Shown here one piece after another: positions 21,489 to 43,947 of a DNA stretch of 64,000 nucleotides; position 1 is the first letter of the stretch; each line of letters starts with the position of its first letter. The DNA is from Oikopleura dioica (taxonomy: Eukaryota > Animalia > Chordata). The DNA lies in the NCBI GenBank assembly GCA_907165135.1, contig OU015568.1, forward strand, positions 124,001 to 188,000, given 5' to 3'. The translations under genes and the position numbers were made by a program. The notes under the pieces are model-generated. The model searched no databases. It worked only from the letters and a program-made list of their open reading frames with translations, and was not told the origin of the DNA.

Positions 21489-22330
21489 TCAAAATCGCTC
21501 ATCAAGAGTTCGAACCGTATTGACAAAGCATAGAATATTTTCATTCTTGTTACACCACTGTCTCACGTAAACATCCCTCATGGGACAGTAGTAAGTAGCT
21601 GGTACATCAAAGACGCCAGCAAATGCGTATTCGAGAGCGGCTCCGTAGCGGCCAATGTTGTTCATATTCATCTATATTTTGACTTGATGATTAAGAGTCA
21701 AAATAACCTGGATCATCATGGAAAGCGAAAATAATAAAAGCTCGATGCAGATTCTGCAAAGAAGATGGACTAAAAAAGCGAATCGAATTTGTGGGCTCCA
21801 GACCACCTCAACCACTTTTTCCCAATCACTCGCAGTTTTCGTTTTTCTTTTCTTGTTTTCATAACTTCTCGGTTCGTCAGCTTGGATTCTTTTGAAACAG
21901 ATTTGTCGATTGTGTGATCTGATCAAAAGATCGTAGACTTTTCTTCAAGCTTTCTTCTCTTCGCATCTAAAGAATGGTAGTGGTTTCTCGTCGAAAATCG
22001 GAGCAAACGGTACCTAATCGTCGCTTTCAATCTTCAAGATAAATATAGCTCGTAAAAACAAAACTTGGAAAAAGCGTTGCGATCTTTAAATTGACTCATT
22101 TTTTCTGTCGAAATCAAGGAAGAGTACGATCCTTTGAATCCTTCCCAATTGAATTTGCCAAAGCTTGTCCAGTCCGATCGGCATAAAATTATTGTAAAAA
22201 GCATTCTGGCAACCAAACAAAACCGTGTCGCATTAAAAGTCGTCTAAAGAGCCTGTCCAGATCGCCGGACCAATCAAAGCAGCCATTCCTAGTCGAAAGC
22301 CACCAGTAAGGACGTACCATAGGATGTCAA
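21489..22330 (-). pseudogene. Divergent connexin-like gene, uninterrupted paralogue with frameshifts
   Basis: MAALIGPAIWTGSLDDF.CDTVLFGCQNAFYNNFMPIGLDKLWQIQL (extracellular loop 1); KKRKLRVIGKKVVEVVWSPQIRFAFL; FDVPATYYC...QWC...ILCFVN (loop 2). Confidence 0.75.
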
Positions 22331-23253
22331 GACGGGTACTATACAAAAGTGCTAGAATACTGTCACGTAGGGAAGTTCATTAAGAAAACCTGTATTGAAG
22401 TATTCAATCAATGTTTCTGCAAGAGCGAGCCCCATTTTTTTAATCTGATCGAAATTCGCTGCGTTAGGATATTCTCTCGCCAAGAAAAAGAGAGCAAGGA
22501 TTCAAGTCCTGCTTTTATGGAGCGGACGGTGGCTGTCGATATCGTGTGCGCGCTAGACCGCATAAGAGGAATGAACATTCTCTTCCATTTCTTGCGAAAA
22601 CAATAAGGGTTCATTATAAGGGGACGCCTCTCCCCCTGATTGCCTTATGCTCAATTCGGGTTAGGGTTAGGGTTAGCGATCCTGGCAATCATTGACAATA
22701 AGCTATTAATAAAAGCTTATTATTGAACCTGAATTTATAGACATAGTATTTGATTCAAGGAAACAAATAATTCTTCTTCTTAATTTGTATCAACAGAAAC
22801 TACATTTGCGTTCTCGACCGAGTTTATCAAACAATGTTCCAGGAGTCGATAATTTATCAGCTTTTTCGATCGCGAGTGCATCCTCAACCGTAAATTACTC
22901 GCATTTTCGTAGACTAAAAAGCTCGTACCGGCGATATTATCTGGTTGAAACTTTCCCTGAAATAGCCGTTCGGGACATTAAGGGAATTTCTAGCGCTGGT
23001 CGGAAGAGCACGGTTGCGTTCTTCGGCAAACTGTCGACCGATCAAGGCACGATTTTTAATGGAACGAATCTTTCGATGGAAAAAATGGCTACATGCAGAA
23101 ACGAAGTCCGCCACTAAAATCAATAAGAAAGGTCTTTTATCAAGATTCTTTAGTACCTGTAAGAGCTATTGAAAGAAGACAGGTGATGGTCATGTAGGAG
23201 AGGGAGATTTCCTTTTCCGTTGGCTAGAATTTTTGCAAGAGAAGGACTTCTGA

Positions 23254-23581
23254 TTAAATTACTTTATTGACAAAGCAAAGAATGTTCTTGTTTTTGTTGC
23301 ACCACTGTCTGACGTAGACGTCCTTGACTGGACAGTAGTAAGTGGCTGGTACATCAAATAGTCCGACGAACGCGTATCTATGCTCAGCTCTGTATCGCCC
23401 GATGTTGTTCATATTCAACTTAATTTTCAATGTACTCGAGAGCGCCAAAAAAAGAAACCTGGATCATTGTGGAAAACGAAAATAAGCACACGTCAACGCA
23501 CAGTCTGCAAAGAAGATGCACTAAGAACGCAAATCGAATCTGCTGGCTCCAGACCACTTCGACCATCTTCTTCCCCATCAC
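23254..23581 (-). pseudogene. Connexin-like gene copy 2, 3' half (interrupted by the giant hAT element)
   Basis: KKMVEVVWSQQIRFAFLVHLLCRLCVDVCLFSF and FDVPATYYCPVKDVYVRQWCNKNKNILCFVNK, paralogous to 21489-22330. Confidence 0.8.
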
Positions 23582-24224
23582 TAGGGATGGCATACAAAAA
23601 ATTATATCGCGATTGCGACGTCGCCTTGGAAAACCGAGGGCACCATCTTGTAGAGCAGAAAATTCTGATTCAGATAGGACCCAAAAAAAGGATTTTCGTA
23701 AATAGGTACCTGGATTTTTAGGCACTTTTCTGTAACTCCTCTAAAGGATGCAAAAATTAATTTTTTTTCGTGGAAAGTAGTGTATTTTCATGCAAAAAAT
23801 CCATTTCTGCAAAAAAAATTAACCGCGTAAGAAGAAAAAACCGAGAAAAATGCAAAAAACTGTCGAGAGAGGAAAGCAAAAATCAGTGACGCGGCGGTTA
23901 CGTAACAGCGCGGCAGCCGCGTTACGGCGCTGTTCGCCCGCTTGCCTAGCTCAGCACTGAAAGAGCTCTTTTTCTCTCTCAATTAACTAATTTTCACAAA
24001 TAGCGTTAATATTTTTTACTAAAAACACTGTACTAAACTTATAAATGAGGAATTTTATTAATACTGTAGATTTTACAGTGTCAAATTGAATCGTAAGCGA
24101 AGAAAGACGCTTGTTTTCCCCTAAATTGAAGCTTATTCCTCCTGTAGCTGCTAATGAGAGCTCTTAAAATACTTCAGGTTGTGAAAAACACTTCCAGTAA
24201 TGAAAGAGTACCTGTCGATAACTC

Positions 24225-24868
24225 AATCGACTCGCCAAAGGAACCATTCGTCTTGCATCTCCTTTACGACTTCCTGCAATCCAGTGATCCATTATTTAGC
24301 GACGTTCTCGCCACACTGGGAGTAAAAAACGGTCAGATTCAGATTAAACTTGTCGCCGTGGTATCCCTTATTTTACGACGGAAGTGTTAAAGCCTGCCAG
24401 AAGCAAACAAGCGAAATTTGGAACTCGTGAGAATACTCGTCGATTTTGAAAGAAAATGTGTTGTTTTTCCAAAACTCTGTTTCTTCCAACGACTACAGCG
24501 AATTCATTAGGGTCTATCGGCTGGGGAGGACGATTCGGAATGATGAGTGGTCTCATGCAGCGCTGGTTGATCCTAGAACAGGAGCTCTTATCGAGGAGTT
24601 TTTCGGGGAATAACAAAAATCATATCCGGAATGAAAAGTGATCCAATGAACCCTGGGGGTCGTGTCTAACACCACTCCGCTGGTAATGAGCATGTAAGCG
24701 AAGGCGCCAGGGTCGATGCCGTCGATCGAGTGTCGTTCAAAATTGATTCCGCAGTTTCTCAAAAGTGTGATCGAATCTTCGGCGTACATGTCGGTCTTGA
24801 TGTCGTAGTTGAAGTTGAACTAGAAGGTGCAGCGGCCCGGCGCGCACTCGTCTTTTTCGTTCATGAAA
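24225..24868 (-). pseudogene. CAF1/POP2 (CNOT7/8) deadenylase remnant inside the giant element
   Basis: FMNEKDECAPGRCTF*FNFNYDIKTDMYAEDSITLLRNCGINFERH...AYMLITSGVVL...WITFHSGYDF and later GLQEVVKEMQDER; in-frame stop, degraded middle. Confidence 0.88.
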
Positions 24869-27707
24869 GTTAAAAAATGCAGCGATGATTTTGGGAAAAA
24901 TATTGAAAGGAAGAGGAAATTTGATGAAATTACTGATCAAACTGAAGACGAGCAAATTGCTACCGGTAATTAACTAGTAGTTAATAACTACTGTAATGAT
25001 GAATTTTCATTGATTGCTGCATCGATGAAATCTACGAGCAAAAAGCCACGACGAGCGGCGGAAAAAAGGCCGTGAATTTTAAACGAGAGTTCAAAGAGCC
25101 AGAAATGAACTCTGACTTTGAATCAGTGACTGACGAGGACGAGTTTGATGAAGACGAGTCGCGTGGCCAGGACCCTGAACTCGCCGCTTAGGGAACAGGA
25201 CCAACAGGTGAACACCAAAAAGTGACCGATGAGTCGAGCCGAATTTCCGCAGTTTCAATTTGTTTCCAAATTCGCTCTCCAGAGCTCCTTTCCCGTCCAT
25301 TTCAGCGCTGATAACTCTTTCCAAGAATAAACATACCATGATCAAAATGCTTGGAACAGCAGATGCAAGTAGCCTGAGAAAGACGTTGTTGAACATGGGC
25401 TACTGTCAGACCAGAGCGTATCCAAAGGAAGTGATGGATGGAAGAATGAAGCCTCCAAGACATAAAAATCGTCAACCAAGATTCTTTTCTGATTCAGAAG
25501 AAAAACTAATGATCGAGTTGCTGGGTCGGAGATAAGCGTTGCAGCAGTTCAATTACAAAAATTTTTGTCAGTCATAAATTAAAATAAACCCGCCCATTTA
25601 TTGATTATAAACGAAAAAAATCGAGAAAGGTCTTTTTTTGAAATTTATTGGTTGGCTTTGGCAAATCGCCAGCTTTTCACGCTTTTCAAGCTTTTCAAGC
25701 TTTTTCACGTTTCTTATTCAATTCAAATCTAAAATGAGAAAAGTAACAATTTTTTTTCTTGTGTCCGGGTTCGCAATAGCAACAGAGAATTGGAAAAATG
25801 CGGAAGATGTTGAGATATCAAAACTTGCTCAAAAATACCAAAATGAATCCTTTCTTTCTTCGATTCAGGAAATTGTGATAGAATATAATTTTCATAGAAG
25901 AAAAATAGATTCTTAATTAAAACTGACTGATTATCTGAAAATTTTCTATCAATTATAAGCACGTGATCTCATTTCTAAAAAATTTTCAAAATCTTGAGTC
26001 CGACTATTGCCACTCAGGTAGATAATTTTTTAAAATGAAAATTTTATTTGAATTTAAATATTTATTTTTTCGAAGCAATGGAGCTCGATATTATTTTTGG
26101 AAATCCTGAACAACCTGATCAACATTCTCTTCTTCAAAATGTGATTTCAAGAGCTGAGGTAAATTCCTCGAAAACAAGAAAATAATCAATAAATCAAGAT
26201 AAAAATATATACGCCGTATTGTGTTCGACATAGAAGACATATAAAGAATCAATTCAGAAAACATAAAACAGCAGGAACGGTATAAACATAAAATTAAATA
26301 TCGTACGATTTCAAATGATGATTGCTTCTATTTTATTGTTTATATCAAGCTTTTTAGCTTTTTCTTTTGACAGCATATTGCGAGATCATCAACCTTGCCA
26401 ATTTATAGGCCTGATGAAAATTATTTTATGCCTTGCGAATTATTTGTATATATTTTCATTTAATCACAGAGGACTCAGCATATTTATTCAACGAAATTCT
26501 TCAAAATGCTCAATGGGGCCCGAATGTCTATTCAACGCTTTTGTAAGCTATTTAAGAAACACAAAATTAGGGCGTCGAATCGCGAAAAGTCGGACTTGGA
26601 GCGCGCTAAAGCTTACGTGCCGCGATGAGCACCGCTTTTTAAGCGTTTGCGTGCTTTTGTGAACAGATATTAACGCAAATCGATTGCTTAGGCATTTTTT
26701 TCTTTCAAATTTCCTCCAATGCGATAACTCAAAAAAGCGCTCCCGATACGACTTGGGCGTTGCGCATGTCAGAGCGCACGCTCTCAGTCCGATCACCCCT
26801 GATTCGACGCTTTGCATTAAATTTCAATTCTTAGTGTTAAATTTGGCACTCTGAAAAAAAGACAACCTTTCATTAGAGAAACTCTAGAGGTAATTATAAT
26901 TTTAATCGAATCAAATTTCGAAGGTCAATCTTAATAATTTCTCTTTTACTTATATTAAGCGCGTCGATTCGGCAAGTTATGATGAGGAGGCCAAAATCCT
27001 GAAAGGTTTTATTACCTATTCAAATGCAGGAAAGGATTCCTTACTTTTATTGCTTGAAAACTCTTTATAAAATTTTTAAATATTTGTGTTGAAACCTGCC
27101 TGAGCATTGGAGATTTTTGAAGGGCGCCTCACTTTTAAAAGAAGCCCAAGAACAGCTGAAAGATATTTGAAAACCGCGCTTACACTAGAAAAAATATGCC
27201 AAGGTATGAAAATTCTTTAATAGTAAAAATGAAATATTGATGATAAATAAAATTTTAGATTATTTGCATAATTTGGCGGAAAATCATAACGGCAAAAATG
27301 GCTGGAGTTTGGAAAAGAACCAATTTATCCCCGAGCTTCTGCCGATGTTTGAACGAATTGGATTGGCTATTCACCAGAAGACATTAGATACTCTTCAAGA
27401 ATTCAGCTTCGAGGAACTAATGAACTTTGTCCTAGAGTAATCATAAAATAAAGAATTTAATTAATCTTTCGAAATTTTTGAGTCAGCAATAATTTTTTGA
27501 ATTTTTTCTTCCTCTATTTTATCTTCATCTTCTTGATCTCTGCGCGCTCTCATCGCCTTGAAAACCAAAGCTTCTCCTTCTTTTTCCGGAAGTTCCCTTA
27601 ATTCGATAATAATCGGATATAGCTTAAGAAACTCTGGATTATTATCATTCATAGAAATAAGCCGAGGAAATTTGACGTTTCGAGCATAGCTCAGGAAACT
27701 GATTTAG

Positions 27708-28236
27708 GGACCTGGGCGAGCAGCGCTGAGCCAATCTTCATGCGCTTGCCGTTCTTGTTAGAAATAATATTTATTGAAATTTCTTTTTTCTCTTTCATTC
27801 TTGGTTGATGAGCTAGCGAGAAAAAGAGAAGCTCAACTTCAAAAGGCATCAAGTCTTGCAAACTTTATTTTTTCTTCATGAACTAGCATTATTGAAAAGC
27901 GCGTTAAATTCTGAACAGATCCCACCCAATCAGCTAAACTAAAGCGGTAATCATAAGCGTCTAAGGACAGATAAACAAGATGACTTAGCGCCCGCCCAGC
28001 GGGAATCATGTCCAGGAAGTCTAAAAAGCTAAATCGGAGCGTCCAACCGTGCCGCAACTACCAATGAGTACCGATTTAGTTTAGCTGATTGGGTGGGATC
28101 TGCTCAGAATTTTACGCGCTTTTCCAAAAAGCTCAAGATGAGGAGATATGATTTACAAAAAAAATTTCAACAAATCTTATTTCCAACAAGAATGGCGAGC
28201 GCGTGAAGTTTGGGTTAGCGCTGCTCGCCCAGGTCC
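27708..28236. mobile_element. Foldback MITE
   Basis: Outer IR GGACCTGGGCGAGCAGCGCT / AGCGCTGCTCGCCCAGGTCC; inner IR AAAAGCGCG...CAGATCCCACCCAATCAGCTAAACTAAA (~27895) inverted at ~28075-28125. Confidence 0.8.
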
Positions 28237-29179
28237 TTTAAGCACTCTTACCTTAGCCATTTTCCAGTATGATTTATCGACGAAACGGTAACTCTCCATA
28301 AGCGTATATTTGTACTTCGAAAATCTTGATTTTCATAATGCTTATGCAGAGTTCCAAAAAACGAAAAATTTTTGCTTGTAGATAATCGCATGATCGTTCG
28401 CAGAAAAAAAGAAAACGAAATGTTGGCGTGCAAGTGCGTTTGCTTGTGCGTTTTGGGACCCTGGCTTTAAAACTCCGAATACGCTAAAAGTGTTCTTATT
28501 ATCGTCGATTTTTAAAGATTTTATTTACCGTTCTGCGTGCCTGTTATCTGCGGTGATTCGATAATTCAGGTCCGGAAGCTTGTCAACAAAATAAGCCTCC
28601 TTTTCGTATTTTTGGACTATGCGATCTAATGATTGTCTGAAAATCATATTAAGGGGGATGTCGCCAAAATTGGGTCGGTAATGAATATTTCTCGTATAAA
28701 CTTAGCTAGAAATTTTCAAAAGAGCGATCACGCGAACCTTAAGGGGATAGAATGAGGTTTTCGAAAATATTTCAATTAAAAAGAGTTAAACGTTTCATCT
28801 TGCGAGAAACTTACCTCACATGAAAATCCAGCTTATTTGTAATTTCCTCATTTTTTCTCACAGAATTGAAAAGATTTTCTAGCACTGCCATTGCTTTCTT
28901 TGCGAATGCCTTGTCAGTTTTGCTTTTTTTCTTCAGAGTATTTTCCTTATAAATTTCGAATAATCGTCGAAAACATCCAGTGAATGATGAGTTTGATCGT
29001 CCTCTTACTCTATTTATCTTTTCGATAAAGTTTTGGAATGCCTTCGCTGGATTTTGACATATCAAAGAAAAATAACTGAACTGAGTTGAGCTAGGCTGTG
29101 TGAACAGTTCTTATGCACAATTCTGGAGCGCACAATTCCGGAGATTTCCGACAAAAAATCGAGACCAAAAAACTATTCG

Positions 29180-29474
29180 TGTGACTAGGTTCGTTGAATT
29201 TGGATATTATTTGTATTTTTTTCATCAGGAAATGGATTGATGACTAGGTTCGTGAGACTAGGTTCATGACAAAAACTCACGAACCTAGTCCCACGAACCT
29301 AGTCATCAAGCCATTTCCTTTACTGAGCGAAAATTTTTACCATTTCAAAACTCACGAACCTAGTCCAACGAACCTAGTCATCGACTCATTTCCCTTACTG
29401 CCCTTAAATTTAGCCCTATTTCAATACTCTGGTAGAACCCACCACGAACCTAGTCCCACGAACCTCGTCCTCAC
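29180..29474. repeat. Inverted clusters of CACGAACCTAGTC subrepeats (MITE-like)
   Basis: GACTAGGTTCGT copies at 29183-29270 face several ACGAACCTAGTC copies at 29279-29470. Confidence 0.65.
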
Positions 29475-29996
29475 TAACTAAGTCCTCATTACCAAAAAAT
29501 CGAATTTCGGGCATTTTTTACAGAAACTTAAGGGTATCTCATTGAAAAATAATAATTGAAAATCCAATCTTTTTGATTTCAGCTGGATATCTTGAGCCAC
29601 CGGATTCTTGTAGAAAGATTCTTGTTATTTCCCAAAACATCTTAAAATTGTCTTTACGAAAATGATTTTTCTTATTAAATTTACCATTATTATCGAAGCT
29701 TTTAGCTTAATGACATTGTAATCTTCTTTTTCGGAGATATTCAAGATAATTTTGATATATTTTTTCTCTAGATTTTCTTTAATTTTATTTTCATTCAAAT
29801 CGATATCACCTGGAAAAAGAGCACAAACTTCAAGAATTTGCTCCTCAGCAAGAAGAAACATCTTAAAAATTTACGATTTATGGTCAAATATAATATAAAC
29901 TTGCCTGCACGTTATTGCTATGAACTGCGTACCGAGATCCTGAGATTAGTTTTCGAATGTCAATATGGACAATTTTCTAACATTTTGATTGCTTAA

Positions 29997-30677
29997 GGGT
30001 ACTACCTTCGATTTCCCCAATTTTACCATTGAATAACTCTTAACATATCAATAATGATGGAGAACTTATAGGCTCTAAAAGTACATCTATCTTAGATCTT
30101 CAATCTGTCAGAAGCGTTTTCGGTTTGCTCAATAAAAAGTCGGTTAATTTCTAGCTCAAAGTAATCAACTATTCGAAAATGGCCTAAATAAACGGCCGAA
30201 TAGCCCGAAAGTTAGCCTGAAAACTGAGTAATATTATGATTTAAATATTAAATTTGAACCTTTATCTTAAAAATGACAGAAGGTTTTTGTGATTGAAAAA
30301 TAACTTATACCAAATTTAATTTTTTGAAAATTGTGTCTCTGCGACTTTGCTAAAACTAAGCATTTTTCAAAACTTGGCGACGCATTCTTGTCTCTAGAAG
30401 CCAAAATAACTAACTTTAAGAATTGATAAAGTCACCATGAAAGTCGCCTTGCTCTGAGCTTCAAAACAAGCACTTATTTGAAAGAATCAGACACGAAAAT
30501 TTTTTTCGGAAAAAATACCTTTTAGTACTGAAATCGATTTAAAATCGTTTTTTCATGAAAATGGTAAACGTTATGAATGAAATTTTCGGATATTTTTAGA
30601 TCAAAATTTTATGAAGAATCTATTTTCGATGAAAAATTAAACATTCACAGTCATCGGGGAAATCGAAGGTAGTACCC
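29997..30677. mobile_element. TTAA-flanked MITE with GG termini (Kolobok-like)
   Basis: TTAA|GGGTACTACCTTCGATTTCCCC ... GGGGAAATCGAAGGTAGTACCC|TTAA, a perfect 22-bp TIR. Confidence 0.9.
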
Positions 30678-30681
30678 TTAA

Positions 30682-30975
30682 GGGTAATTCAGGAAATCGG
30701 CGCGGCGGCTCACTCTCGTTACGCGCCCCCTTAGTCAGTACTTTTTATAGTAGAATCGAATCCAGAGTTGGGAAGATCTTCTCAAATTTTATTTTTCGAC
30801 ATGAGTCAGAAAGCGGTCTCTAGTAGCAGATCATAAATGAGTGTTATCCTCATTGGTAGCGAAAATAAATTTTGAGAATATCTTTCCAACTCTTGATTCG
30901 AGTTTTACTTATAAAAGTACTGATTGAGGGGCGCGTGGCGAGCGTTAGCCGCCGCGCCGATTTCCTGCATCACAT
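30682..30975. mobile_element. Palindromic MITE abutting the previous one at a shared TTAA
   Basis: IR CAGGAAATCGGCGCGGCGGCT (30690) / AGCCGCCGCGCCGATTTCCTG (to 30967); further internal IR AGTACTTTT..AG / CT..AAAAGTACT. Confidence 0.75.
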
Positions 30976-31840
30976 TTAAGGGGTTCGCATACGATATTTT
31001 CAAAATCTCTATTATCGAGAAACGAGTATGCGCTTAAACAAAATCGTGTCGCTGGCCACAGAAATCAGCACATTCTCCATTAGCAAATAAATCAATTGAA
31101 AACCAGGCCTTTATCCGATTTAAATAATCGCTTGGATGCAAGTTCTGACTCTTGCAGAAGTCCTTCAGAAGTTCAAAAAATTCGATCAACCTATCATGTA
31201 TCTCATATTTTGAACTTATGCCTTCCAAAATATGCCTAAAATTATCGTTAGATAATAAATTCATAAAAAAAACTTAACCGTAAGTCATTTGCATTGTGTG
31301 AAGCCAGTATTCTTGAGCCAAACGTCAACTTTAATGTTAACAATTTTATTTTTCTTTATATTTAAAATCTACCTTTAAGCTCATAAGAAGCTTAGAGACA
31401 TCTTTTTTACGGTTAAAATACAGAAGCCTTAGATTAAAAATAATGAACATGCATTTTTAACCGTTCCTTCTGGTTGACCCCGCTTATTTTTGTCCAAAGC
31501 TGACTGTGATTGATCTTCAGTATCAAAATGTTCTTGTTATGGTTCATTAATATAAAAATGGAGCGATGTGAATATGACCGAAAATCAAGAAACATTTTAT
31601 TTATTGGATTAACAAATAATGAACCGTACGGCAAAAGCTCTTTCGTCGAAACGGCCGGCTACGACAGTGTTTCTTACGATCTGCAAAATGTTGGGTTAGT
31701 TTCAATCCCAGAACCAAGCATTTTTCCGAGAAAAAATTCAAGGCAAATAATTACTATAATTATGTGTAATATAAAGAAACACTGTCTATGTGCACTGATA
31801 ATAGAGATCTATAAAAGTGCCGTAAACGATACGAATTTAA

Positions 31841-31930
31841 CCCTATCTCGAGCGCGAGCGCATGTTGATGCGCTCGCTAGTGTAAATAACGAGCTCTGAT
31901 TGGAGGAGAATTTCACTGCTCGAGACGGGG
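31841..31930. mobile_element. 90-bp piggyBac-like mini element
   Basis: TTAA|CCCTATCTCGAGC ... GCTCGAGACGGGG|TTAA. Confidence 0.6.
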
Positions 31931-32679
31931 TTAAAAATCATAAAAAATTAAGATCCCTGTTTGAGCAGTGAACTTCCAGTATTTCCTGAGGAAATCCTTC
32001 TTCTTTAAAGATCGCGATCATTTTTCTGGTCGATGCAAGCGCAGCTGCTGCGGTATCTTATTTTATAAAATTAAGTTTTATCGAAATTAAAAAAATATTA
32101 AAACCTGAAACGATGAAACGAACCCGAGATATCATCTCACTTGTAATGGGTTTTCTACATATATGAATTCAAATTTTAATCAAATAAAACCCCTGCTATA
32201 AAATGAATATTGTTTAAGCTGCTTCACGGAGGTTTGAAAAAGTAACTTTTAGCTTATCAAAAGATAACGGGCTTTCCAATGAGCTGAGTCTTAAGGTCTC
32301 AATGTTCCATTGAAATTGAGGGTCAAAGTTTTTGCGGCAACTGAGCTTAGCTACAAAATATGACAATTTTAAAAGATGGAAGTGAAAGAAAATAAAAAGT
32401 TAAGTTTGGCCCTTCAATTTCATGAAAATCGAAAAATATTTTCTGCATAGATAGTGAGAGTGATAAAGAGCGAGCCGAGCGCACGGAGCTTGGTCGGCGG
32501 AGTCCCTTATATTCACATGAGCGAAAACAACGCGCAGTTTTTTCAAAACCTTCCTTAACAGCTTCCTTGGCGACACTGTCAGCGTTGTGAAATTGCTGTT
32601 GATAAACTGAAAGAGCCATAAAAGACGATGTTCCGTCCTCGAATTCTTGATTGGAGATACCAATGGCATACACAGGAAT

Positions 32680-33197
32680 CAGGGTTCTAAATCGACTAGT
32701 CAAGTTTCGACTAAAGTCTAAGTCGAGTCGAGTCTTAGTCGAAAAGACTAGCTCGACTCGACTAGACAGGTTGTTGAAATAAGTCGACTCGACTCGACTT
32801 GACTTGACCCTATAAGTCAACTAGATTGTCGACTAGTCGAAAAAGTCGAGAGCAATATTGAGGAGAAAGTCGAAAAATCTAGTCGAATAAGTCGAAAATC
32901 TAGTCGAATAAGTCGAAAAAATCACTTTTTTGCTTTGGACTTTTCGACTTCGCTTTCGACTTTGGACTAAATTTCGACTATTCGACAATTTTTCGACTTT
33001 TTCGACTAAATTTATATATTTTTCCAGTTTTTCAACTTTTCGACTAATAAGTCGATTTAGTCGACTCGACTCGACTCGACTCGACTAGCGATTTTCAAAA
33101 CGCTTTCGACTCGACTCGACTCGACTCGGCATTTTCAGCTAGCCTTTCGACTCGACTCGACTCGACTTCTGAGATTCAGCTCAGATTTAGAACCCTG
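32680..33197. mobile_element. hAT-type MITE with (TCGAC)n interior
   Basis: TIR CAGGGTTCTAAATC / GATTTAGAACCCTG; perfect 8-bp TSD ACAGGAAT at 32672-32679 and 33198-33205. Confidence 0.93.
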
Positions 33198-33888
33198 ACA
33201 GGAATATTTCTATAAAAAGAACTTGATAAACAGTTCAGACACTCCTTAATCCGTTAACCAGCCAATCAAATATTTGGATACATGATCGAAGGCGCGCTCT
33301 TTGAATTTTTTACCTTGCCGATGTTGTTCCGTCTTTATCAGGGTCATTCGCTTTAGTATAATTTTTTCTATTTTATCCATGTATCGAACTGATGACCTCT
33401 TTAAAATAAGTTATTTTATTATCATTTATGACCCTTTACAATATGAATGCACAAAATTTCAGATTTTTTACAAACCACTCGATCTGTGCTTTTCAAAGAA
33501 TGAAACTGTACGTTCTTAAGGATAAAATAATAAAAATTTTTTTCACTCTTTGCTGATATGATCGGAATAAAGCCAAGTGGCAGCGTTGCAATTAATCTTC
33601 TTGATGGAACCGAGTAAATTTTCTCACGATTTTCCTTATCGCTATCAATGCAAACTTCTTTTAGACAGGGTGTGATTGAGGCGAAATCGAAAAGAAGCTC
33701 ATTTATGTCTTCGAAAGGATTTAGCTTTAATTTAATGAAATAAGAAAGAATTTTTTGAAATTTTAAATCATTTAATTTTTGATTAGAAAGAAAACCTTTT
33801 CTGTACTCTTCAACCCTTTCAATTTTGCTTGAAACAAAACTTTGAGGGTTTCGACTTTATATGTAGGCTAAAAATTTTGATTTGATCA

Positions 33889-34608
33889 TTAACGTGAACT
33901 CACTGTTGATTGGCCACGATTATCTTTTGATTGCGAATTCGATCTGCGATCCGGTGCTTCTTTCAGGAATATTTGTCGGATAGAACTGCATTGTCTCATA
34001 ATATTTTCATCCTCGATAGAATCTTTGTAAATTTTTCTTTGTTTTCTTGGACGGAGAACTCTGTCACAGGAATTGGAAGTCAAAATTGTTTCTGACTCGG
34101 GCAAACATTCACTGTATCGATTAAGACTCTCAGAATCATCGTTATCACATTCCATTGGCTGAGAAGGTGGAAAATAAGCATCTTCAGCGGCATTACAGAA
34201 ATAGAGTTCGAATGTGGCACTTGGATCTTGCAGAATCATTTTAGCCAACGCTGCTTGGTTCCATTTTGGCTGTGCCTTGTTTAAGTCGAGAGTGGGCCAC
34301 AGCAATTTTCCTTTCATTTTATCACCAAGAATTTTATTAAGTTCATGAAGAGCTTTTCGATCAGGTCTTTGGAAGAAATTGTACCACATTTCTCGTTCAC
34401 TTAATTTTCGGGAGTTTTTGTAATTTTCCATTTTCTCCCAAAGTTCTTTTTCAAAATAACCTTTAAATTTTGTTTCTTTTGCGCTCACTGAAAATTTACC
34501 GTTTTGAATCATGAAATTTTTAATATCTTCATATCTTAATGGACATCCGTCTTTTCTCTTATCAGCGGCGCTCGCATTGACAAATAGAATAAAAAAAACA
34601 AATATCAT
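33889..34608 (-). CDS. Intronless 239-aa predicted secreted protein, unknown family
   Basis: Open frame with a signal-peptide-like start MIFVFFILFVNASA; charged, protein-like composition; no stops. Confidence 0.6.
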   Translation of the reverse strand: MIFVFFILFVNASAADKRKDGCPLRYEDIKNFMIQNGKFSVSAKETKFKGYFEKELWEKMENYKNSRKLSEREMWYNFFQRPDRKALHELNKILGDKMKGKLLWPTLDLNKAQPKWNQAALAKMILQDPSATFELYFCNAAEDAYFPPSQPMECDNDDSESLNRYSECLPESETILTSNSCDRVLRPRKQRKIYKDSIEDENIMRQCSSIRQIFLKEAPDRRSNSQSKDNRGQSTVSSR

Positions 34609-34819
34609 TTCAATAAGAAATTCGATTTTAAAATTGATGGGAACGCTTCTAAAATTTAGAAATATGACCTTGGAAATATTCCAAAATTAACCGCTGGTTT
34701 TTGCCAAGTTTTCAGCGAGAGAATATGAGTCACAAATTGTGTCTTCATCTTTTGAGAGTTTTTGGCCAACGAACTTAAGGAGGAAAGCCCCTTTAAAATT
34801 TAATCAGTCGAATTTTAGA

Positions 34820-37800
34820 GGCCGTCTCAGCCCAATTTTTTGATTTTTGAATTTAAGGGGCTTGCCGGCCTTTCGGGCCGTCTCAGCCCCATTTTTTGAT
34901 TTTTGAATTTAAGGGGCTTGCCGGCCCTTCGCGCCGTCTCAGCCCAATTTTTTGATTTTTGAATTTGAGGGCTCGCCGGCCCTTCGGGCCGTCTCAGCCC
35001 CATTTTTTTGATTTTTGAATTTAAGGGGCTTGCCGGCCTTTCGGGCCGTCTCAGCCCCATTTTTTGATTTTTGAATTTAAGGGGCTTGCTGGCCCTACGG
35101 GCCGTCTCAGCCCCATTTTATGATTTTTGATTTAAGGGGCTTGCCGGCCCTTCGGGCCGTCTCAGCCCAATTTTTTGATTTCTGAATTTAAGGGGCTTGC
35201 CGGCCCTTTGGGCCGTCTCAGCCCAATTTTTTGATTTTTGAATTTAAGGGCTTGCCGGCCCTTCGGGCCGTCTCAGCCCCATTTTTCGATTTCTGAATTT
35301 AAGGGGCTTGCCGGCCCTTTGGGCCGTCTCAGCCCAATTTTTGATTTTTGAATTTAAGGGGCTTGCCGGCCCTTCGGGCCGTCTCAGCCCCATTTTATGA
35401 TTTCTGAATTTAAGGGGCTTGCCGGCCCTTTGGGCCGTCTCAGCCCAATTTTATGATTTTTGAATTTAAGGGGCTTGCCGGCCCTTCGGGCCGTCTCAGC
35501 CCAATTTTATGATTTTTGAATTTAAGGGGCTTGCCGGCCCTTCGGGCCGTCTCAGCCCAATTTTTTGATTTCTGAATTTAAGGGGCTTGCCGGCCCTTTG
35601 GGCCGTCTCAGCCAAATTTTTTGATTTCTGAATTTAAGGGGCTTGCCGGCCTTTCGGGCCGTCTCAGCCCCATTTTTTGATTTTTGAATTTAAGGGCTTG
35701 CTGGCCCTACGGGCCGTCTCAGCCCCATTTTTTGATTTTTGAATTTAAGGGGCTTGCCAGCCTTTCGGGCCGTCTCAGCCCCATTTTTTGATTTTTGAAT
35801 TTAAGGGGCTTGCCGGCCCTTCGGGCCGTCTCAGCCCAATTTTTTGATTTCTGAATTTAAGGGGCTTGCCGGCCCTTTGGGCCGTCTCAGCCCCATTTTT
35901 TGGTTTTTGAATTTAAGGGGCTTGCCGGCCTTTCGGGCCGTCTCAGCCCCATTTTGTGATTTTTGAATTTAAGGGCTTGCCGGCCCTTCGGGCCGTCTCA
36001 GCCCATTTTTTTGATTTTTGAATCTGAAGGGCTCGCCGGCCATTCGGGCCGCTTTAGCCCGATTTTATGATTTTGAATTTAAGGGGCTTGCCGGCCTTTC
36101 GGGCCGTCTCAGCCCCATTTTTTGATTTTTGAATTAAAGGAGCTTGCCGGCCCTTCGGGCCGTCTCAGCCTCATTTTGTGATTTTTGAATTTAAGGGGCC
36201 TGCCGGCCCTTCGGGCCATCTCAGCCCAATTTGGTGATCTTTGAATTTAAGGGCTTGCCGGCCCTTCGGGCCGTCTCAGCCCCATTTTTTGATTTTTGAA
36301 TTTAAGGGACTTGCCGGCCCTTCGGGCCGTCTCAACCCAATTTTTTGATTTTTGAATTTAAGGGGCTTGCCGGCCTTTCGGGCCGTCTAAGCCCCATTTT
36401 GTGATTTTTGAATTTAAGGGGCTTGCCGGCCCTTCGGGCCGTCTCAGCCCCATTTTGTGATTTTTGAGTTTAAGGGGCTTGCCGGCCCTTCGGGCTGTCT
36501 CAGCCCCATTTTGTGATTTTTGAATTTAAGGGGCTTGCCGGCCCTTCGCGCCGTCTCAGCCCAATTTTTTGATTTTTGAATTTGAGGGCTCGCCGGCCCT
36601 TCGGGCCGTCTCAGCCCCATTTTTTGATTTTTGAATTTAAGGGGCTTGCCGGCCTTTCGGGCCGTCTCAGCCCCATTTTTGATTTTTGAATTTAAGGGCT
36701 TGCTGGCCCTACGGGCCGTCTCAGCCCCATTTTATGATTTTTGATTTAAGGGGCTTGCCGGCCCTTCGGGCCGTCTCAGCCCAATTTTTGATTTCTGAAT
36801 TTAAGGGGCTTGCCGGCCCTTTGGGCCGTCTCAGCCCAATTTTTTGATTTTTGAATTTAAGGGGCTTGCCGGCCCTTCGGGCCGTCTCAGCCCCATTTTT
36901 CGATTTCTGAATTTAAGGGGCTTGCCGGCCCTTTGGGCCGTCTCAGCCCAATTTTTTGATTTTTGAATTTAAGGGCTTGCCGGCCCTTCGGGCCGTCTCA
37001 GCCCCATTTTATGATTTCTGAATTTAAGGGGCTTGCCGGCCCTTTGGGCCGTCTCAGCCCAATTTTATGATTTTTGAATTTAAGGGGCTTGCCGGCCCTT
37101 CGGGCCGTCTCAGCCCAATTTTATGATTTTTGAATTTAAGGGGCTTGCCGGCCCTTCGGGCCGTCTCAGCCCAATTTTTTGATTTCTGAATTTAAGGGGC
37201 TTGCCGGCCCTTTGGGCCGTCTCAGCCAAATTTTTTGATTTCTGAATTTAAGGGGCTTGCCGGCCTTTCGGGCCGTCTCAGCCCCATTTTTTGATTTTTG
37301 AATTTAAGGGGCTTGCTGGCCCTACGGGCCGTCTCAGCCCCATTTTTTGATTTTTGAATTTAAGGGGCTTGCCAGCCTTTCGGGCCGTCTCAGCCCCATT
37401 TTTTGATTTTTGAATTTAAGGGCTTGCCGGCCCTTCGGGCCGTCTCAGCCCAATTTTTTGATTTCTGAATTTAAGGGGCTTGCCGGCCCTTTGGGCCGTC
37501 TCAGCCCCATTTTTGGTTTTTGAATTTAAGGGGCTTGCCGGCCTTTCGGGCCGTCTCAGCCCCATTTTGTGATTTTTGAATTTAAGGGGCTTGCCGGCCC
37601 TTCGGGCCGTCTCAGCCCATTTTTTTGATTTTTGAATCTGAAGGGCTCGCCGGCCATTCGGGCCGCTTTAGCCCGATTTTATGATTTTTGAATTTAAGGG
37701 GCTTGCCGGCCTTTCGGGCCGTCTCAGCCCCATTTTTTGATTTTTGAATTAAAGGAGCTTGCCGGCCCTTCGGGCCGTCTCAGCCTCATTTTGTGATTTT

Positions 37801-38654
37801 TGAATTTAAGGGGCCTGCCGGCCCTTCGGGCCATCTCAGCCCAATTTGGTGATCTTTGAATTTAAGGGCTTGCCGGCCCTTCGGGCCGTCTCAGCCCCAT
37901 TTTTTGATTTTTGAATTTAAGGGACTTGCCGGCCCTTCGGGCCGTCTCAACCCAATTTTTTGATTTTTGAATTTAAGGGGCTTGCCGGCCTTTCGGGCCG
38001 TCTAAGCCCCATTTTGTGATTTTTGAATTTAAGGGGCTTGCCGGCCCTTCGGGCCGTCTCAGCCCCATTTTGTGATTTTTGAGTTTAAGGGGCTTGCCGG
38101 CCCTTCGGGCTGTCTCAGCCCCATTTTGTGATTTTTGAATTTAAGGGGCTTGCCGGCCTTTCGGGCCGTCTCAGCCCCATTTTTTGATTTTTGAATTTAA
38201 GGGGCTTGCCGGCCCTTCGGGCCGTCTCAGCCCCATTTTGTGATTTTGAATTTAAGGGGCTTGCCGGCCCTTCGGGCCGTCTCAGCCCCATTTTGTGATT
38301 TTTGAATTTAAGGGCTTGCCGGCCCTTCGGGCCATCTCAGCCCAATTTTGTGATCTTTGAATTTAAGGGGCTTGCCGGCCCTTCGGGCCGTCTCAGCCCC
38401 ATTTTTTGATTTTTGAATTTAAGGGACTTGCCGGCCTTTCGGGCCGTCTAAGCCCCATTTTTTGATTTTGAATTTAAGGGGCTTGCCGGCCTTTCGGGCC
38501 GTCTCAGCCCCATTTTTTGATTTTTGAATTTAAGGGCTTGCCGGCCCTTCGGGCCGTCTCAGCCCAATTTTTTAATTTTTGAATTTAAGGGGCTTGCCGG
38601 CCTTTCGGGCCGTCTCAGCCCCATTTTGTGATTTTTGAATTTAAGGGGCTTGCC
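34820..38654. repeat. Satellite array, ~69 x 55-56-bp monomers with a ~1.6-kb higher-order duplication
   Basis: Monomer GCCGTCTCAGCCCCATTTTTTGATTTTTGAATTTAAGGGGCTTGCCGGCCCTTCGG; rare variants recur at ~1615-bp spacing. Confidence 0.98.
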
Positions 38655-39307
38655 TCGTGTAGAGAGATTTTTTCATAACTTCAATCGCTTAAAATCTTCG
38701 AGGGAAAAAATCGCTAAAAAGACCGAGCGTTCATGAATTCGATGATTTGCTTGAAGGCCAGGGTCTCCATTTTGCTTGTTTGATTGTTCGACGTTTGCGA
38801 GCTCTGGGCCTGTTTCTCCTTATCGCGACGGATGTGCTCTCCAATATTAATTGCGGATTGCAGCGGCTTCTCACGCAGAAAAAATGATCGCCCAGAAGTG
38901 ACTCGGATCTTGAAAATCTCACCGCTCTGTTGAATGAGGCCCTTTTCTCCAGCTGATCAGGCCTGTTGCTAAGATCAGATGAGGAGTGTTTTAATGAATC
39001 GCGCATTGTTATAGTTTCGAGAGCAAGTGAGCTCCGCCGACCGGAGAAACTGTCGCTGCACTGTCGTGGTTCTCGGTTCGAGTTGATACAGAGTAATAAA
39101 TAAAGTACTAAGACGCCGGTTTTATCATACTTCTTTATTTCAATTTAATAGATCTTTCGTACAGTCTATGACTTATAATACTAAGATAAAAATGGCCAAG
39201 AGTTTGTAATTTTTCAATGTATCTTCTTGGGAAATTGCAGCTTAATTTAAACAGGCCGTGTTTTACATGTAAAAGTGCACAAGTAGCAAGTAAGAGCCAG
39301 CCGAATT

Positions 39308-39581
39308 CTATCCGAGATTCTGTTGCCCTTCTCTGCTTGTGATGAATTCGTTGTCGGGGTCGAACGGATCGAATACGTCTCTGTAGGCAGCATCGTCGTC
39401 AACTCCATCGACGTCCAAATCAGCACCGACGCGGTAGCCAGCCATGAAACCTGAATTTATGAGTTAGAATTTATTGTCGAAATAAAAAACAAGGCTTCAA
39501 TCAAAAAGACTTACCAGCAAATCCAACTGCTAAAATAACGAGAGCTGCAATGAAGCCAACAACAATTTTGCAGCAAATCAT
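39308..39581 (-). CDS. Small 69-aa single-pass membrane/secreted protein, 2 exons
   Basis: MICCKIVVGFIAALVILAVGFA-[gtaagt..ttcag, 39451-39514]-GFMAGYRVGADLDVDGVDDDAAYRDVFDPFDPDNEFITSREGQQNLG*; frame is consistent across the intron. Confidence 0.7.
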
Positions 39582-40379
39582 TCGCTTGAGATTGTCTTTT
39601 TTGGCTTTTTATTTGATTTAAATTGTAAAATATTTGATTTATTAATAATGTGTTAAATATATATCGAATTTAGATAAAAGCCATTCCAAGACATCGTAAT
39701 TGGAAGCATTTTTTTTCTCTTTCTCTCTCTTTCCCTTCGAGAAAAGGGTTATTCAACCCTTCCTCAAGACTCATGATAGCAAAATTCGAATTCAGTAGCT
39801 TTTAAATCGCGTTTTGAAAGACTGAATCGAAGAAAAACCGGCAAAAGGGGACCTGGAATCATTTTTCCCTTTCATCCCTTTTCCGCGAATCAGGAGCTTC
39901 CGTAGGAACAACCCACTTTTAGAATTCAAATAAAATGTATGATCATTATTAACAAATGAATTGAAATACAGTGCTGATAAGGATTTGATAGCAATGAAAA
40001 GTGTTTCCAGCGGTGAAATTGGCAAGCGGGCGAACAGCGCCGCCACGCGGCTGCCGCGCTGTTACGTAACCGCCGCGTCACTGATTTTTGTTTTCCTCTC
40101 TCGACAGTTTTTAGCTTTTTCTCGGTTTTTTCTTCTTACGCGGTTAAATTTTTTGCAGAAATGGATTTTTCGCATAAAAATACACTACTTTCCACGAAAA
40201 AATTAATTTTTGCATCCTTTAGAGGAGTTACAGAAAAGTGCCTAAAAATCCAGGTACCTATTTACGAAAATCCTTTTTTGGGTCCTATCAGAATCAGAAT
40301 TTTCTGCTCTACAAGATGGTACCCTTGGTTTTCCCAGGCGACCTCGCAATCGCGATTTAATTTTTGTATGCCATCCCTA

Positions 40380-40910
40380 CCCATCACCTGCATTTTTCGT
40401 TTTTCCTTTCTCGCCTTCATTACTTCCCGATTCATGAGCTTCGACGTTTCAGAAACAGATTCTTCGATAGTATGATCTGATCCAAAATTCGTCGATTTTT
40501 CCTCCAGTTTTCTTCTTCTCGCATCTGTCAAATTTCAAATCAGGAAGGCTAGACTCGAAAAGCCTGACTGTACCTAATCGTCGTTTTCCATCTTCCAGAT
40601 AAATAAAGCTCGTGAATACAAAGCTCGGAAAAAGCGTCGCAATCTTTAAATTGATTCAATTTTTCGGCTGAAAATTTCAGCTTGAAATCAAGGAAGAGTG
40701 CGATCCTTTGAATCCTTCCCAATTGAATTTGCCAGAGCTTATCAAGTCCGATCGGCATAAAATTATTGGAGCAAGCATTTTCGCAACCGAATATAACCGT
40801 GTCACATCTAAAATCATCTGCAGTCCCAGTCCAGATCGCCGGGCCAATTAAAGCCGCCATTCCAAGGCGAAAGCCGCAAGTAAGGGCGTACCAAAGGTAC
40901 TTTCGATTAC
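40380..40910 (-). pseudogene. Connexin-like gene copy 2, 5' half
   Basis: LWYALTCGFRLGMAALIGPAIWTGTADDFRCDTVIFGCENACSNNFMPIGLDKLWQIQL aligns with connexin TM1/E1 (FIFRIM...VWGDEQADFVCNT..GCKNVCYD..FPISHIRLWALQL); ends KRKMQVMG at the TSD. Confidence 0.82.
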
Positions 40911-41535
40911 ACGTTCCTTACTCAATGTGAAATATACGACGGAGACTCGGCAATCTCAACTTACTCGGCCTCATCGAGGCATTACGGAGGCAAACTGGCA
41001 TTCTTCAATGGACAACCGACAACAGTTGGGAGCAGCTGGTTTGGTTCTTCTAGTCCGAAAATGGTGGAGACTTTGAGCTCTACTCGCTTGGTTTCTTTGG
41101 GCGATTTCCCGATGTCTTTCAAAAAATTGATTCTTTAATTAAAATCTTAAGGATAATTGCTTATCATGTTCTTATTGGCCTTTCGAGTGGAAATCTTTTG
41201 CTGGCTGGAGGAGAAACATATGAGGACGACTGGGTTGCTCAAACTGCCATTTGGCTTCTTGAAAACGACACTTGGAAAACGATCGGAAATCTACAAAACG
41301 TAAGCTCCAGATTGGAATAATTGTCAGAGAGTTAAATTCATCTCAGGCTGACTCCGGAGGCTCTAGTATAATGATCGACGATTCAATTTTCATCGTCTCC
41401 GGCTACGAAGATCCACATCCAATTGAGCGACTTGAATTAGAAGGAGATGTACTGGTCAATCAAGAAGTCATTGGACACACTGTTTACAGTTCGATTCCTG
41501 TTCTTTTGAAAGTTTTCGCTGATTATTGCGCCTGA
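40911..41535 (+). pseudogene. 3' exons of a Kelch-like family gene (5' part absent)
   Basis: CEIYDGDSAISTYSASSRHYGGKLAFFNGQPTTVG; LLLAGGETY...IWLLENDTWKTIGNL; HPIERLELEGDVLVNQEVIG...ADYCA*; same family as 14280-15240. Confidence 0.75.
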
Positions 41536-41815: not shown

Positions 41816-42570
41816 GGGTAGGCTTCATTTCCCCAAGAGCTTCATTTCCCCAGAGCCTCATCTCCCCAAGAGCTTCATCTCCCCAGCCTGGGCAAATGAA
41901 GCTTCTGGGGAGATGAAGCCCTGGGCAAGTGAAGCTTTTAAGTGCGTGGGCAAATTGTACTTTGTTGTCAATGGCTGAACCTGGCTGCGCATCAAAAATA
42001 ATTTTTTCAAAAAATTGAAAGTCTTAAATATGCGTTTCGTGAAAGAAATACGTCTTTCAAAGTCATCAGAATTATGTTTTCCTTCTTTATTTCTAAATAA
42101 TCAACCACCAATAATCAAGCTGAATGATTACAAGATTGGTTCGATCTGATATTTTTTTCTAAAATGTAATAAATAAAGTACATAATAATAGTTAATGTAA
42201 TAAAAAATAAGGTAACATGCGCAGCGCATACAGTTATGTACGTTATCCGGCCTCTAGCAGACTTGTTCCATAAAAACAGTTTTGATGAAAACTCTATTAG
42301 ATAATTTTTAATGTTCGAGAAATGATACAACTTGATAAAATTCTATTATTGACAATAATTTATTGCCCCGAATGGGGGTTTTAGGTATGAAGAGGTTGAA
42401 TATTTCTCAACATATTTTTCAGTTTTTTTTTTCTGAAAGTAGAATTTGAGCTTCATTAGCCCAAGAGCTTCATCTCCCCAAGAGCTTCATTTGCCCAGGC
42501 TGGGGAGATGAAGCTTTTGGGGAGATGAGGCTCTGGGGAGATGAAGCTCTTGGGGAAATGAAGCCTACCC
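41816..42570. mobile_element. Mutator-like foldback MITE
   Basis: ~125-bp TIRs starting GGGTAGGCTTCATTTCCCC and built of GCTTCAT(C/T)TCCCCA subrepeats; perfect 9-bp TSD GTTTAGCGT at 41807-41815 and 42571-42579. Confidence 0.92.
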
Positions 42571-43947
42571 GTTTAGCGTCGTTAATAATTTTTTACAAAG
42601 TTTGATTTTCCTCGACTTTGAGGAGAATCGCCTGTTCAGAATCAGGCGTGACTCCTGTCAATCGCAAATCAATCGAAGTCAGAGTTGTGTTGCTCCGCAT
42701 CGCGTGTTAAAGATTCTTGCAAGATTCTTCCCCAATATTGCAAGAAGCCAGCAACACTTCCTCGAGCGTTTCATTCTTCGACACCACAGCAAGAAAACGC
42801 CGGAGATGAGGCACTTGAAAAATCAATAGTACTTACAGGAAAGTGCCTTTCCAAAGCCCTCTCCGAGATTATTCGCGGCAATATGCAAGTTCGTCAAGGT
42901 CGAGTTGCTTTCGAGGGCGTCGCCAATGAGCTCTCCACCGATATCGTTGATAAAGTTTTGCGTTAAATTGAGTTTCTACCGATTGGGATTTATTTTTGCT
43001 TATTGTTTACAATAGGGCTCGCCAAAAAAAAGTCGATGTCAATTCTCCCCTACGAATTGCACCTTAAAATGATCCCCGTTTTTTCCTGATTCGAATGATA
43101 TGTCTCTGTCAGGCGTAAGTCTTCGGGAAAAAATTCTAGAGCTAGATCCAAAATCCTGTTTTTGGGACTTCGATCACGTGCCATGACGTCATTTCTCCGG
43201 AAATTTCAATATTTTTTCAATTTTTCGAGCATAACTTTTTATGCTCTTTTAAATAAGCTATTTACGAAGATGGGATCAAGATTTTGCCCAGAAATCCCAA
43301 TAAAATCCTACTAAAAATCCCTCAAATTCACAGTTTTTCGGCCTAATTTTAACCAGAAAACCTTGGATATTTCGAGTTCCCCAAGTTTTCCCGACCCGGC
43401 AAAGTACTTGAAAGAAGCGCAAGGCTTCATTCTATAAGAGTCTTGTCTCAAATCTTGGGAGAATCCAAGTAAACTACCGAAAAAAATTGAATGATTGATA
43501 AAAAATTACGACAATTTTCGATTTTTTCTCAAAAAAGACCATTTTTTTCGCTAAAAATTCTTAGATAGAGCCCGAACCAATACTGCTGATTAAAGCTCAG
43601 ACTCTCAGCTTTATATTTATATCAAATATAAGGAGTTTTGAGAGGTTTTCTTTGTTTATTTTTTCGGTTAAGCAATGAGACCTCGAAAAAGAGCCATTTT
43701 TATCGAAAATTCGCTCTAAAATTTTTTTGGCTGAGTTTAAGGGTGTGGGTTTTAGAACATGGGGAATCAGAAAAACATATTCGCTCGCGACTTCAAGATT
43801 TCATGGCGAGCCCTAGTTTACAAAGCTGTCTAGGTCCTTATCGATAACCCTAACCCTAAGATTTTTCCTAAACAGGAAAATCAATGCGAAAAATCAAGGA
43901 AAAAATCCCAAGTCTTGAGTCTCGTGAGATCCTTCAAAAGCGAATTA

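Follow-up and report, generated by a model that had tools for sequence, protein, structure and literature searches.

The window analysed here, a stretch of 64,000 nucleotides from contig OU015568.1 of the chordate Oikopleura dioica, harbors a connexin gene whose coding sequence is interrupted by a block of 16,798 bp that has the ends of a transposon. Connexin is a chordate-only gene, and in this window it is found as a tandem pair, of which the split copy is one member. The window opens on a complete ribosomal DNA (rDNA) unit, in which 18S (1-1788) is followed by 5.8S and then by 28S (2415-6034). In the OKI2018_I69 assembly of O. dioica, the rDNA array is located at the short-arm tip of the pseudo-autosomal region (PMC8008620). 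An earlier reading of the same letters, referred to below as the original prediction, had proposed that the block is a giant, cargo-carrying transposon of the hAT type.

The ends of the element and the split connexin gene

The element is bounded by the two arms of a long terminal inverted repeat (TIR). The left arm, 381 nt in length, begins with TAGGGATGGCAT and occupies 23582-23962 on the plus strand, and the right arm, of 375 nt, occupies 40005-40379 on the minus strand. An alignment of the two gives 93.4% identity over 381 columns (blastn E=1e-160), and the differences comprise 19 substitutions and 5 indel events, every one of the latter falling in A/T runs. The inverted repeats of the original prediction, put at ~360 bp and ~90% alike, are thus a real pair, although the actual arms are slightly longer and more similar than had been estimated. 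The ends of the element start with TAGGGATGG, so that it has the outline TAGGG...CCCTA, and the first 14 nt are identical between the arms. The 12-mer TAGGGATGGCAT that opens both arms has no further occurrence within the window, and the repeat as a whole is present there as the two arms only (blastn). Within the left arm, the motif (A)TGCAAAAA is repeated four to five times, and a GC-rich inner block is also found. The motif copies are candidate subterminal binding sites for a transposase.

A target-site duplication (TSD) of 8 bp, without mismatches, borders the arms on their outer sides, just as had been predicted. The sequence CCCATCAC stands immediately 5' of TAGGGATGGCAT at 23582 (left copy, 23574-23581) and again immediately 3' of ATGCCATCCCTA at 40379 (right copy, 40380-40387). 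The copies match at 8 of 8 positions, for which the chance is 1 in 65,536. The duplication is exactly 8 bp long, since the ninth bases differ, being C/T on the left and A/C on the right.

The flanks on either side of the element together make up one connexin gene, which is read from the minus strand. Its 5' part, at 40388-40917, contains the TM1-E1-TM2 exon (TM, transmembrane segment; E, extracellular loop) and the start of the exon for the cytoplasmic loop and TM3. Its 3' part, at 23140-23573 and identified by homologue alignment, contains the remainder of the TM3 exon, followed by a short intron and then by the E2 exon. The upstream exon is matched by the Pfam Connexin model over 40552-40917 of the minus strand (E=3.6e-10), and a homologue search with this exon returned four open reading frames (ORFs) on marine metagenome contigs. 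Among the contigs compared, L001-L005, three (L002, L003, and L005) are continuous through the insertion point at 73-78% DNA identity, and in L005 the site bears exactly one copy of the 8-bp target GTGATGGG. When the flanks of the element are joined with a single copy of the TSD, the minus strand has an open frame (...KARKEKRKMQVMGKKMVEVVWSQQIRFAFLVHLL... / ...EVMKARKEKRKMQVMGKKMVEVVWSQQIRFAFLVHLLCRL...), and the joined exon aligns to the metagenome connexin ORFs P0003 and P0004 without a frame break. With homologues that are continuous at the site, a target that occurs once, and a frame that is unbroken, the element must lie in a true coding exon. The earlier claim that excision restores the connexin exon is therefore borne out, and the split copy would be otherwise intact over the exons compared. 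A further connexin homologue, L004:1-729, is of a different form; the first exon region (window position 40577) is fused directly to the last (23322), without the loop/TM3 exon that bears the insertion site.

The other member of the tandem pair, at ~21500-22450 on the minus strand, is colinear with the split copy and shares 77% DNA identity with it. Single nucleotides have been deleted from its exon 1 and from the position that matches the insertion site, and its loop exon contains a TGA. With a TGA and frameshifts, amounting to at least three lesions, this neighbour is a pseudogene, and no intact copy of the pair is found on this haplotype. The original prediction had used it as an uninterrupted reference for the joined exon. 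It is indeed colinear at the level of DNA, but the peptide that was quoted from it, KKRKLRVIGKKVVEVVW, crosses the frameshift of a 1-nt deletion.

Two other features are found in the surroundings of the gene. Just upstream of it, a 17-bp tandem repeat occurs in two blocks of opposite orientation (41822-41937 and 42448-42564), ~500 bp apart, which look like the arms of a foldback structure or of one resembling a MITE (miniature inverted-repeat transposable element). Between the rDNA unit and the connexin pair, a 239-aa ORF at 17221-17937 on the minus strand encodes two ShK-like domains (Pfam E=1.8e-9).

Presence and absence of the interior in public sequencing runs

The state of the locus in other samples was followed by aligning contigs of the public DNA runs X1, X4, and X5, together with the reads of RNA run X11, to 21400-27300. 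Run X5 derives from the study that also supplied the best-matching run, X4 derives from a different study, the contig graph was built with k=31, and X11 is a single RNA run.

Run X5 contains the locus but lacks the unique interior of the element. Its left flank is present at a single-copy depth of 13-15, with 5 substitutions in 1,664 nt, and its depth is 0 over 23961-24354, 24946-25339, and 25734-27300. A 326-nt contig of this run aligns over 23388-23581 and then continues for 133 letters that are unlike the TIR. The empty allele that had been suggested as a check on the insertion is thereby supported at the left junction, where the X5 flank passes 23581 into sequence other than the TIR.

Run X1 appears to contain both states. 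It matches the reference interior perfectly, and the depth of this interior is 90-121 compared with 159-189 for the flank contigs (a ratio of about 0.5-0.7). One flank contig, of 244 nt and at a depth of 159, stops exactly at 23581. In a graph of k=31, a flank contig that enters a repeat is expected to extend ~30 nt into that repeat. The stop therefore indicates two alternative next bases, which is to say filled and unfilled chromosomes that share the same flank.

In X4, the left part of the element (23893-27135) is present at a single-copy depth of 57-65, with 10 differences in 2,963 nt. The segment 25734-27135 is unique, element-specific sequence with no other detectable copy, and over it the depth is 121 in X1, 62-65 in X4, and 0 in X5, with at most 4 differences per kb in X4. 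An identical contig of 606 nt (23893-24498), in which the inner TIR is joined to unique sequence, is found in both X1 and X4. Another X4 contig, of 1,494 nt, matches the element as far as 27135 and is then followed by 905 letters unlike the next 165 nt of the reference. This difference at 27135/27136 is a structural one, inside the element and between samples, and no transposon boundary is visible there in the reference.

The TIR itself belongs to a family. Relative to single-copy sequence, its depth is ~1-2x in X5, several-fold in X1, and ~16x in X4, where values of 924-1130 are set against ~60. Three X4 contigs connect the start of the TIR to other flanks. One X4 family member has a 208-nt deletion internal to the TIR, and the copies in X5 share only the outer ~170 nt. 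On account of the unequal depths and the alternative flanks in X4, the TIR family must be multi-copy and must vary between samples.

A number of smaller results concern the flanks and the search for the same sequences elsewhere. It was considered whether X4 represents a diverged population, from which horizontal spread would have followed, and this was dropped as X1 and X5 share its flank variants at 22308-22341; such haplotypes are common in this population, whose heterozygosity is 3.6%. In the intergenic flank, 145 nt (22618-22762) are replaced by GATAAT in the X1 and X5 contigs, an indel polymorphism that is possibly a further small mobile element. No reads of X11 fall on the connexin exons or on the junction. 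Neither a conserved 24-mer from the TIR nor a 24-mer bridging the empty site was found in scans of metagenomes. A spurious ORF inside the TIR has no homologues, and the ORFs that span the junction or lie in the flanks are not on record as called genes.

Taken over the flank, the haplotype that bears the insertion is either identical to chromosomes without it or ~0.3% different from them. The population heterozygosity of O. dioica is ~3.6% (PMC8008620). From the existence of a nearly identical flank that lacks the insertion, in so heterozygous a population, and from the undecayed state of the adjacent exons, we infer that the insertion is young and polymorphic.

The interior of the element

Inward of the left arm, at 24200-25010 on the minus strand, lies a decayed fragment of CAF1/CNOT7, a deadenylase of the CCR4-NOT complex. 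An 88-aa translation from 24556-24819 (minus strand) matches the Caf1/CNOT7/CNOT8 chains of the PDB at E=8e-19 to 1e-17 (query residues 1-73). In a three-frame reading, CAF1-like stretches extend from ~25010 down to 24200 and are broken by in-frame stops and frame changes. The fragment is ~93% identical, and so ~7% diverged, to paralogous contigs that are present in X1 and X5. Comparison with such contigs reveals that ~24355-25560 is a patchwork of short segments also existing elsewhere in the genome, with breakpoints at 24609/10, 24874, 25412, 25508/11, and 25551/4. Over the whole of 21400-27300, X11 has only eight reads, all of which match 24609-24651 in part and then run on into genuine CAF1 mRNA. 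The CAF1/CNOT7 piece is certain as a fragment of a host gene; it is a dead copy, with a parent copy elsewhere. The presence of interior host-gene sequence with a parent copy elsewhere is what distinguishes a Pack-type element, and this fragment provides it. The plural host-gene fragments of the original prediction are reduced to this single one (E ~1e-18), which is decayed, with no second fragment recognised.

Four nested elements with TIRs were verified within the interior, compared with the six or more that had been suggested. Three of them are a palindromic MITE with two pairs of inverted arms at 27700-28244, a TTAA-flanked MITE with 30-nt TIRs (GGGTACTACC...) at 29997-30677, and a second MITE at ~30682-30975 (30675-30982 at its widest), which adjoins the previous one at a shared TTAA and whose outer boundaries are approximate. 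The fourth, at 32680-33197, is a 518-bp hAT-like MITE with the TIR CAGGGTTCTAAATC (14/14) and a perfect 8-bp TSD, ACAGGAAT. Two further hAT-like MITEs are found outside the element, beyond the connexin gene. One, of 803 bp at 43013-43815, has a TIR that begins with TAGGGCTCGCCA and a perfect 8-bp duplication, GTTTACAA; the other, of 456 bp at 44120-44575, has a TIR that begins with CAGGGTGGAACGTT and a perfect 8-bp duplication, TTCATTGG.

The interior also contains a minisatellite at 34820-38654, in agreement with the 3.8-kb satellite that was originally noticed. It is composed of 68.8 copies of a 56-bp unit with 91% matches, and the unit has a predicted hairpin fold of -20.5 kcal/mol. No TIRs were found at the edges of 34820-38654, and the idea that the satellite is the cargo of a small transposon of its own was ruled out for this reason.

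A 239-aa ORF with an ATG start is found at 33889-34608 on the minus strand, measuring 265 codons from stop to stop and having a hydrophobic N-terminus. It has no relatives in the PDB, in a protein atlas, in a word-based search, or in an exhaustive HMMER search of 1.84 billion representative proteins. A second ORF, of 157 aa, starts within the nested MITE at 32680-33197 and for that reason is probably a chance frame. The original prediction had counted two intact-looking ORFs in the interior. Five other interior ORF pieces have no PDB match. The suggestion that the element moves genes is not supported, its sole recognisable gene being a decayed fragment and its long ORFs lacking relatives among the 1.84 billion proteins. 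As for a transposase, none had been seen by eye, and a Pfam search detected no transposase domain in 147 interior ORF pieces of at least 40 aa, in the long ORFs, or in the window, a negative of limited weight for short eukaryotic exon pieces, as the 88-aa CAF1 piece was also missed.

The arrival of the element and its relation to known systems

The contents of the element are old. The arms are 6.6% diverged and the dead CAF1 ~7% diverged, and there is also the patchwork, together with nested elements that have TSDs of their own. The insertion itself appears to be much younger than this internal decay, because the split exons are still open, whereas the pseudogene next to them has collected at least three lesions. 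Old contents and a recent insertion together mean that the element was already large and complex on arrival. We consider it likely, on the whole, that a 16.8-kb non-autonomous hAT-type element transposed as one unit into a connexin exon near the rDNA array. The original prediction had argued for insertion as a single block from the clean excision. That argument is insufficient alone, because a small MITE enlarged in place leaves an identical scar, but the reads of X5 and X1 make insertion as one unit probable. Even if the X5 allele were the product of an excision, the whole unit would have moved.

In terms of mechanism, the element would have grown over an extended period while resident at earlier sites, as gap repair captured pieces of host sequence, as other elements inserted into it, and as the array expanded. 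A hAT transposase encoded elsewhere, by an autonomous relative with matching ends and with the BED finger, RNase-H-like core, and C-terminal dimerisation domain (PF05699) of this superfamily, may then have bound the terminal and subterminal sequences, and may have moved all 16.8 kb by cut and paste into the exon of the connexin gene, within the region of the cytoplasmic loop and TM3. The insertion would still be segregating with the empty allele, and the gene copy that carries it would be knocked out.

Several points weigh against this account. The read evidence is confined to the left junction and to the first 3.7 kb of the element from the left, and the empty site is deduced from the 133 letters of X5 beyond 23581 that are unlike the TIR. 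Since the outer TIR is repeated, it is not spanned by short contigs, and the link between flank and interior comes from the long-read assembly. The depth ratios in X1 are noisy and fit a 1:1 heterozygote poorly. The Pfam search missed the clear CAF1 fragment, so a decayed remnant of a transposase could likewise escape it. Finally, TIRs of 381 bp are atypical for hAT elements and are more typical of Mutator-like elements (MULEs).

The first alternative is growth in place, in which a long-TIR MITE of ~0.8 kb entered the connexin exon and was later swollen to 16.8 kb by nested insertions, repair filler, and satellite expansion. At least four nested elements, each with TIRs or TSDs of its own, are indeed found in the interior, as is an expandable array, the clean excision scar is equally compatible with such a history, and other members of the family differ from this one, as seen in the 208-nt deletion in X4 and in the X5 copies that have only the outer ~170 nt in common. 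We nevertheless regard it as unlikely. The flank is shared with interior-less chromosomes, or is ~0.3% from them, despite a heterozygosity of ~3.6% (PMC8008620), and the split gene exons are undecayed. There would have been too little time for at least six independent events and for ~7% decay of the fragment.

It is similarly unlikely that the same architecture belongs to another superfamily, either P-type or Mutator-like in the manner of Pack-MULEs. TIRs of 100-500 bp and captured gene fragments are classic Pack-MULE traits, and it is established that P elements also make 8-bp duplications. The target-site duplications of MULEs are usually 9-11 bp, and a Mutator-like assignment by TSD length was rejected on finding a duplication of exactly 8 bp. 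The terminus TAGGGATG fits the YARNG motif of hAT elements, which as TAGGG is present at both inverted-repeat ends. Three additional YAGGG elements with perfect 8-bp duplications are found in the window (32680-33197, 43013-43815, and 44120-44575). Compared with the weak hAT target consensus nTnnnnAn, CCCATCAC has an A at position 7 and a C at position 2, and among the four YAGGG elements of the window T2 is found in 2/4 and A7 in 3/4. Because of the 8-bp duplication, the TAGGG end, and the three other elements of the same kind, the element is most likely a non-autonomous TIR transposon of the hAT superfamily. The hallmarks behind the original assignment, an 8-bp duplication and a TAGGG terminus, are both present.

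A third possibility, which we judge to be very unlikely, is that the interior is not linked to this site. The assembly may have been threaded through the TIRs into a large and distant member of the family, or a short copy already resident may have received the interior by ectopic gene conversion. Because the outer TIR occurs in multiple copies, the flank is not connected to the unique interior by any short-read contig. X1 has a G at 23490 where the reference has an A, and the three X4 contigs at the start of the TIR join it to other sequences. Against these observations, the presence or absence of the interior tracks the state of the junction in X1 and X5, and the depth of the interior does not exceed that of single-copy sequence, as would fit one locus. 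The arms differ at 25 columns, so reads of more than 1 kb should place them, and the OKI2018_I69 assembly, made from a single male, has 221x Nanopore coverage, with the longest reads reaching 166 kb (PMC8008620).

That the element became a new intron, spliced out to leave a functional connexin, has the intact flanking exons in its favor, but is highly improbable and was rejected on its boundary dinucleotides, its size, and the absence of RNA reads, given that the nine pairs for exact removal (GT-TA, TG-AG, GA-GT, AT-TG, TG-GA, GG-AT, GG-TG, GT-GG, and TA-GG) include none of the form G[TACG]-AG, that a GT used with the terminal AG of the element shifts the frame by -1, that 16.8 kb compares with a median intron length of 48 nt in O. 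dioica (PMC8008620), and that X11, as a single run of unknown lineage, has no reads on the connexin exons or junction. A knock-out allele, and not a new intron, is the best reading of the insertion. A composite of two full MITEs, or macrotransposon, was likewise set aside, as the window has no inner TAGGGATGG/CCATCCCTA and the arms run directly into unique sequence.

Transposition of the 16.8-kb element as one unit would have consequences beyond this locus. O. dioica has one of the smallest animal genomes, given as 65 Mb, in which mobile DNA is considered to be under tight constraint. In the present case, a polymorphic cut-and-paste insertion of 16.8 kb would have destroyed a coding exon while carrying a satellite and smaller transposons along with a gene fragment. 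If this is true, DNA transposition is ongoing in the lineage, large composite units can be moved, and satellites and gene fragments may spread by means of transposons. More tentatively, and with the balance of our judgement leaning against it at present, a currently active hAT family in this 65-Mb chordate genome may mobilise units of ~17 kb by cut and paste in populations in nature, seeding minisatellites and shuffled gene fragments at new loci and creating large presence/absence knock-out alleles. On that reading, the element would rank among the largest hAT-type elements of natural origin and would be a rare case of a Pack-type DNA transposon from an animal. For a connexin paralogue, the locus would supply a knock-out allele of natural origin, and one on which hAT activity is tractable to measure. 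What is notable is the size of the element and the evidence for a segregating, recently moved unit. The mechanism itself is well known from plants.

One of these plant systems is Ac/Ds of maize. The first eight bases of the element, TAGGGATG, equal the 3' end of maize Ac. A hAT transposase is able to move segments of at least 15 kb, and the TIRs of Ac/Ds are 11 bp. Ac/Ds macrotransposons are bounded by two complete elements. In common with them, the Oikopleura element has an 8-bp TSD; in contrast, its ends are single arms without an inner terminus. The Pack-MULEs of rice and other plants are similar in the length of their TIRs and in an interior pieced together as a chimera from fragments of host genes, but MULEs have 9-11-bp duplications and other termini.

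A close parallel is with the Pack-hAT elements that have been documented in maize (Gisby & Catoni 2022, PMC8903248). Those of maize and rice are likewise non-autonomous TIR elements with an 8-bp TSD, host-gene fragments copied at the DNA level, and a presumed mobilisation in trans (PMC8903248). The Oikopleura element differs in its setting, a 65-Mb animal genome, in its length of ~17 kb, and in its 381-bp TIRs. It also differs in its cargo, which is mostly unrecognisable sequence, nested MITEs, and satellite, with one decayed gene fragment identified. By analogy, the element may be described as a non-autonomous hAT that is Pack-type in its behaviour, enlarged by nested insertions and a satellite, and resident in a compact animal genome.

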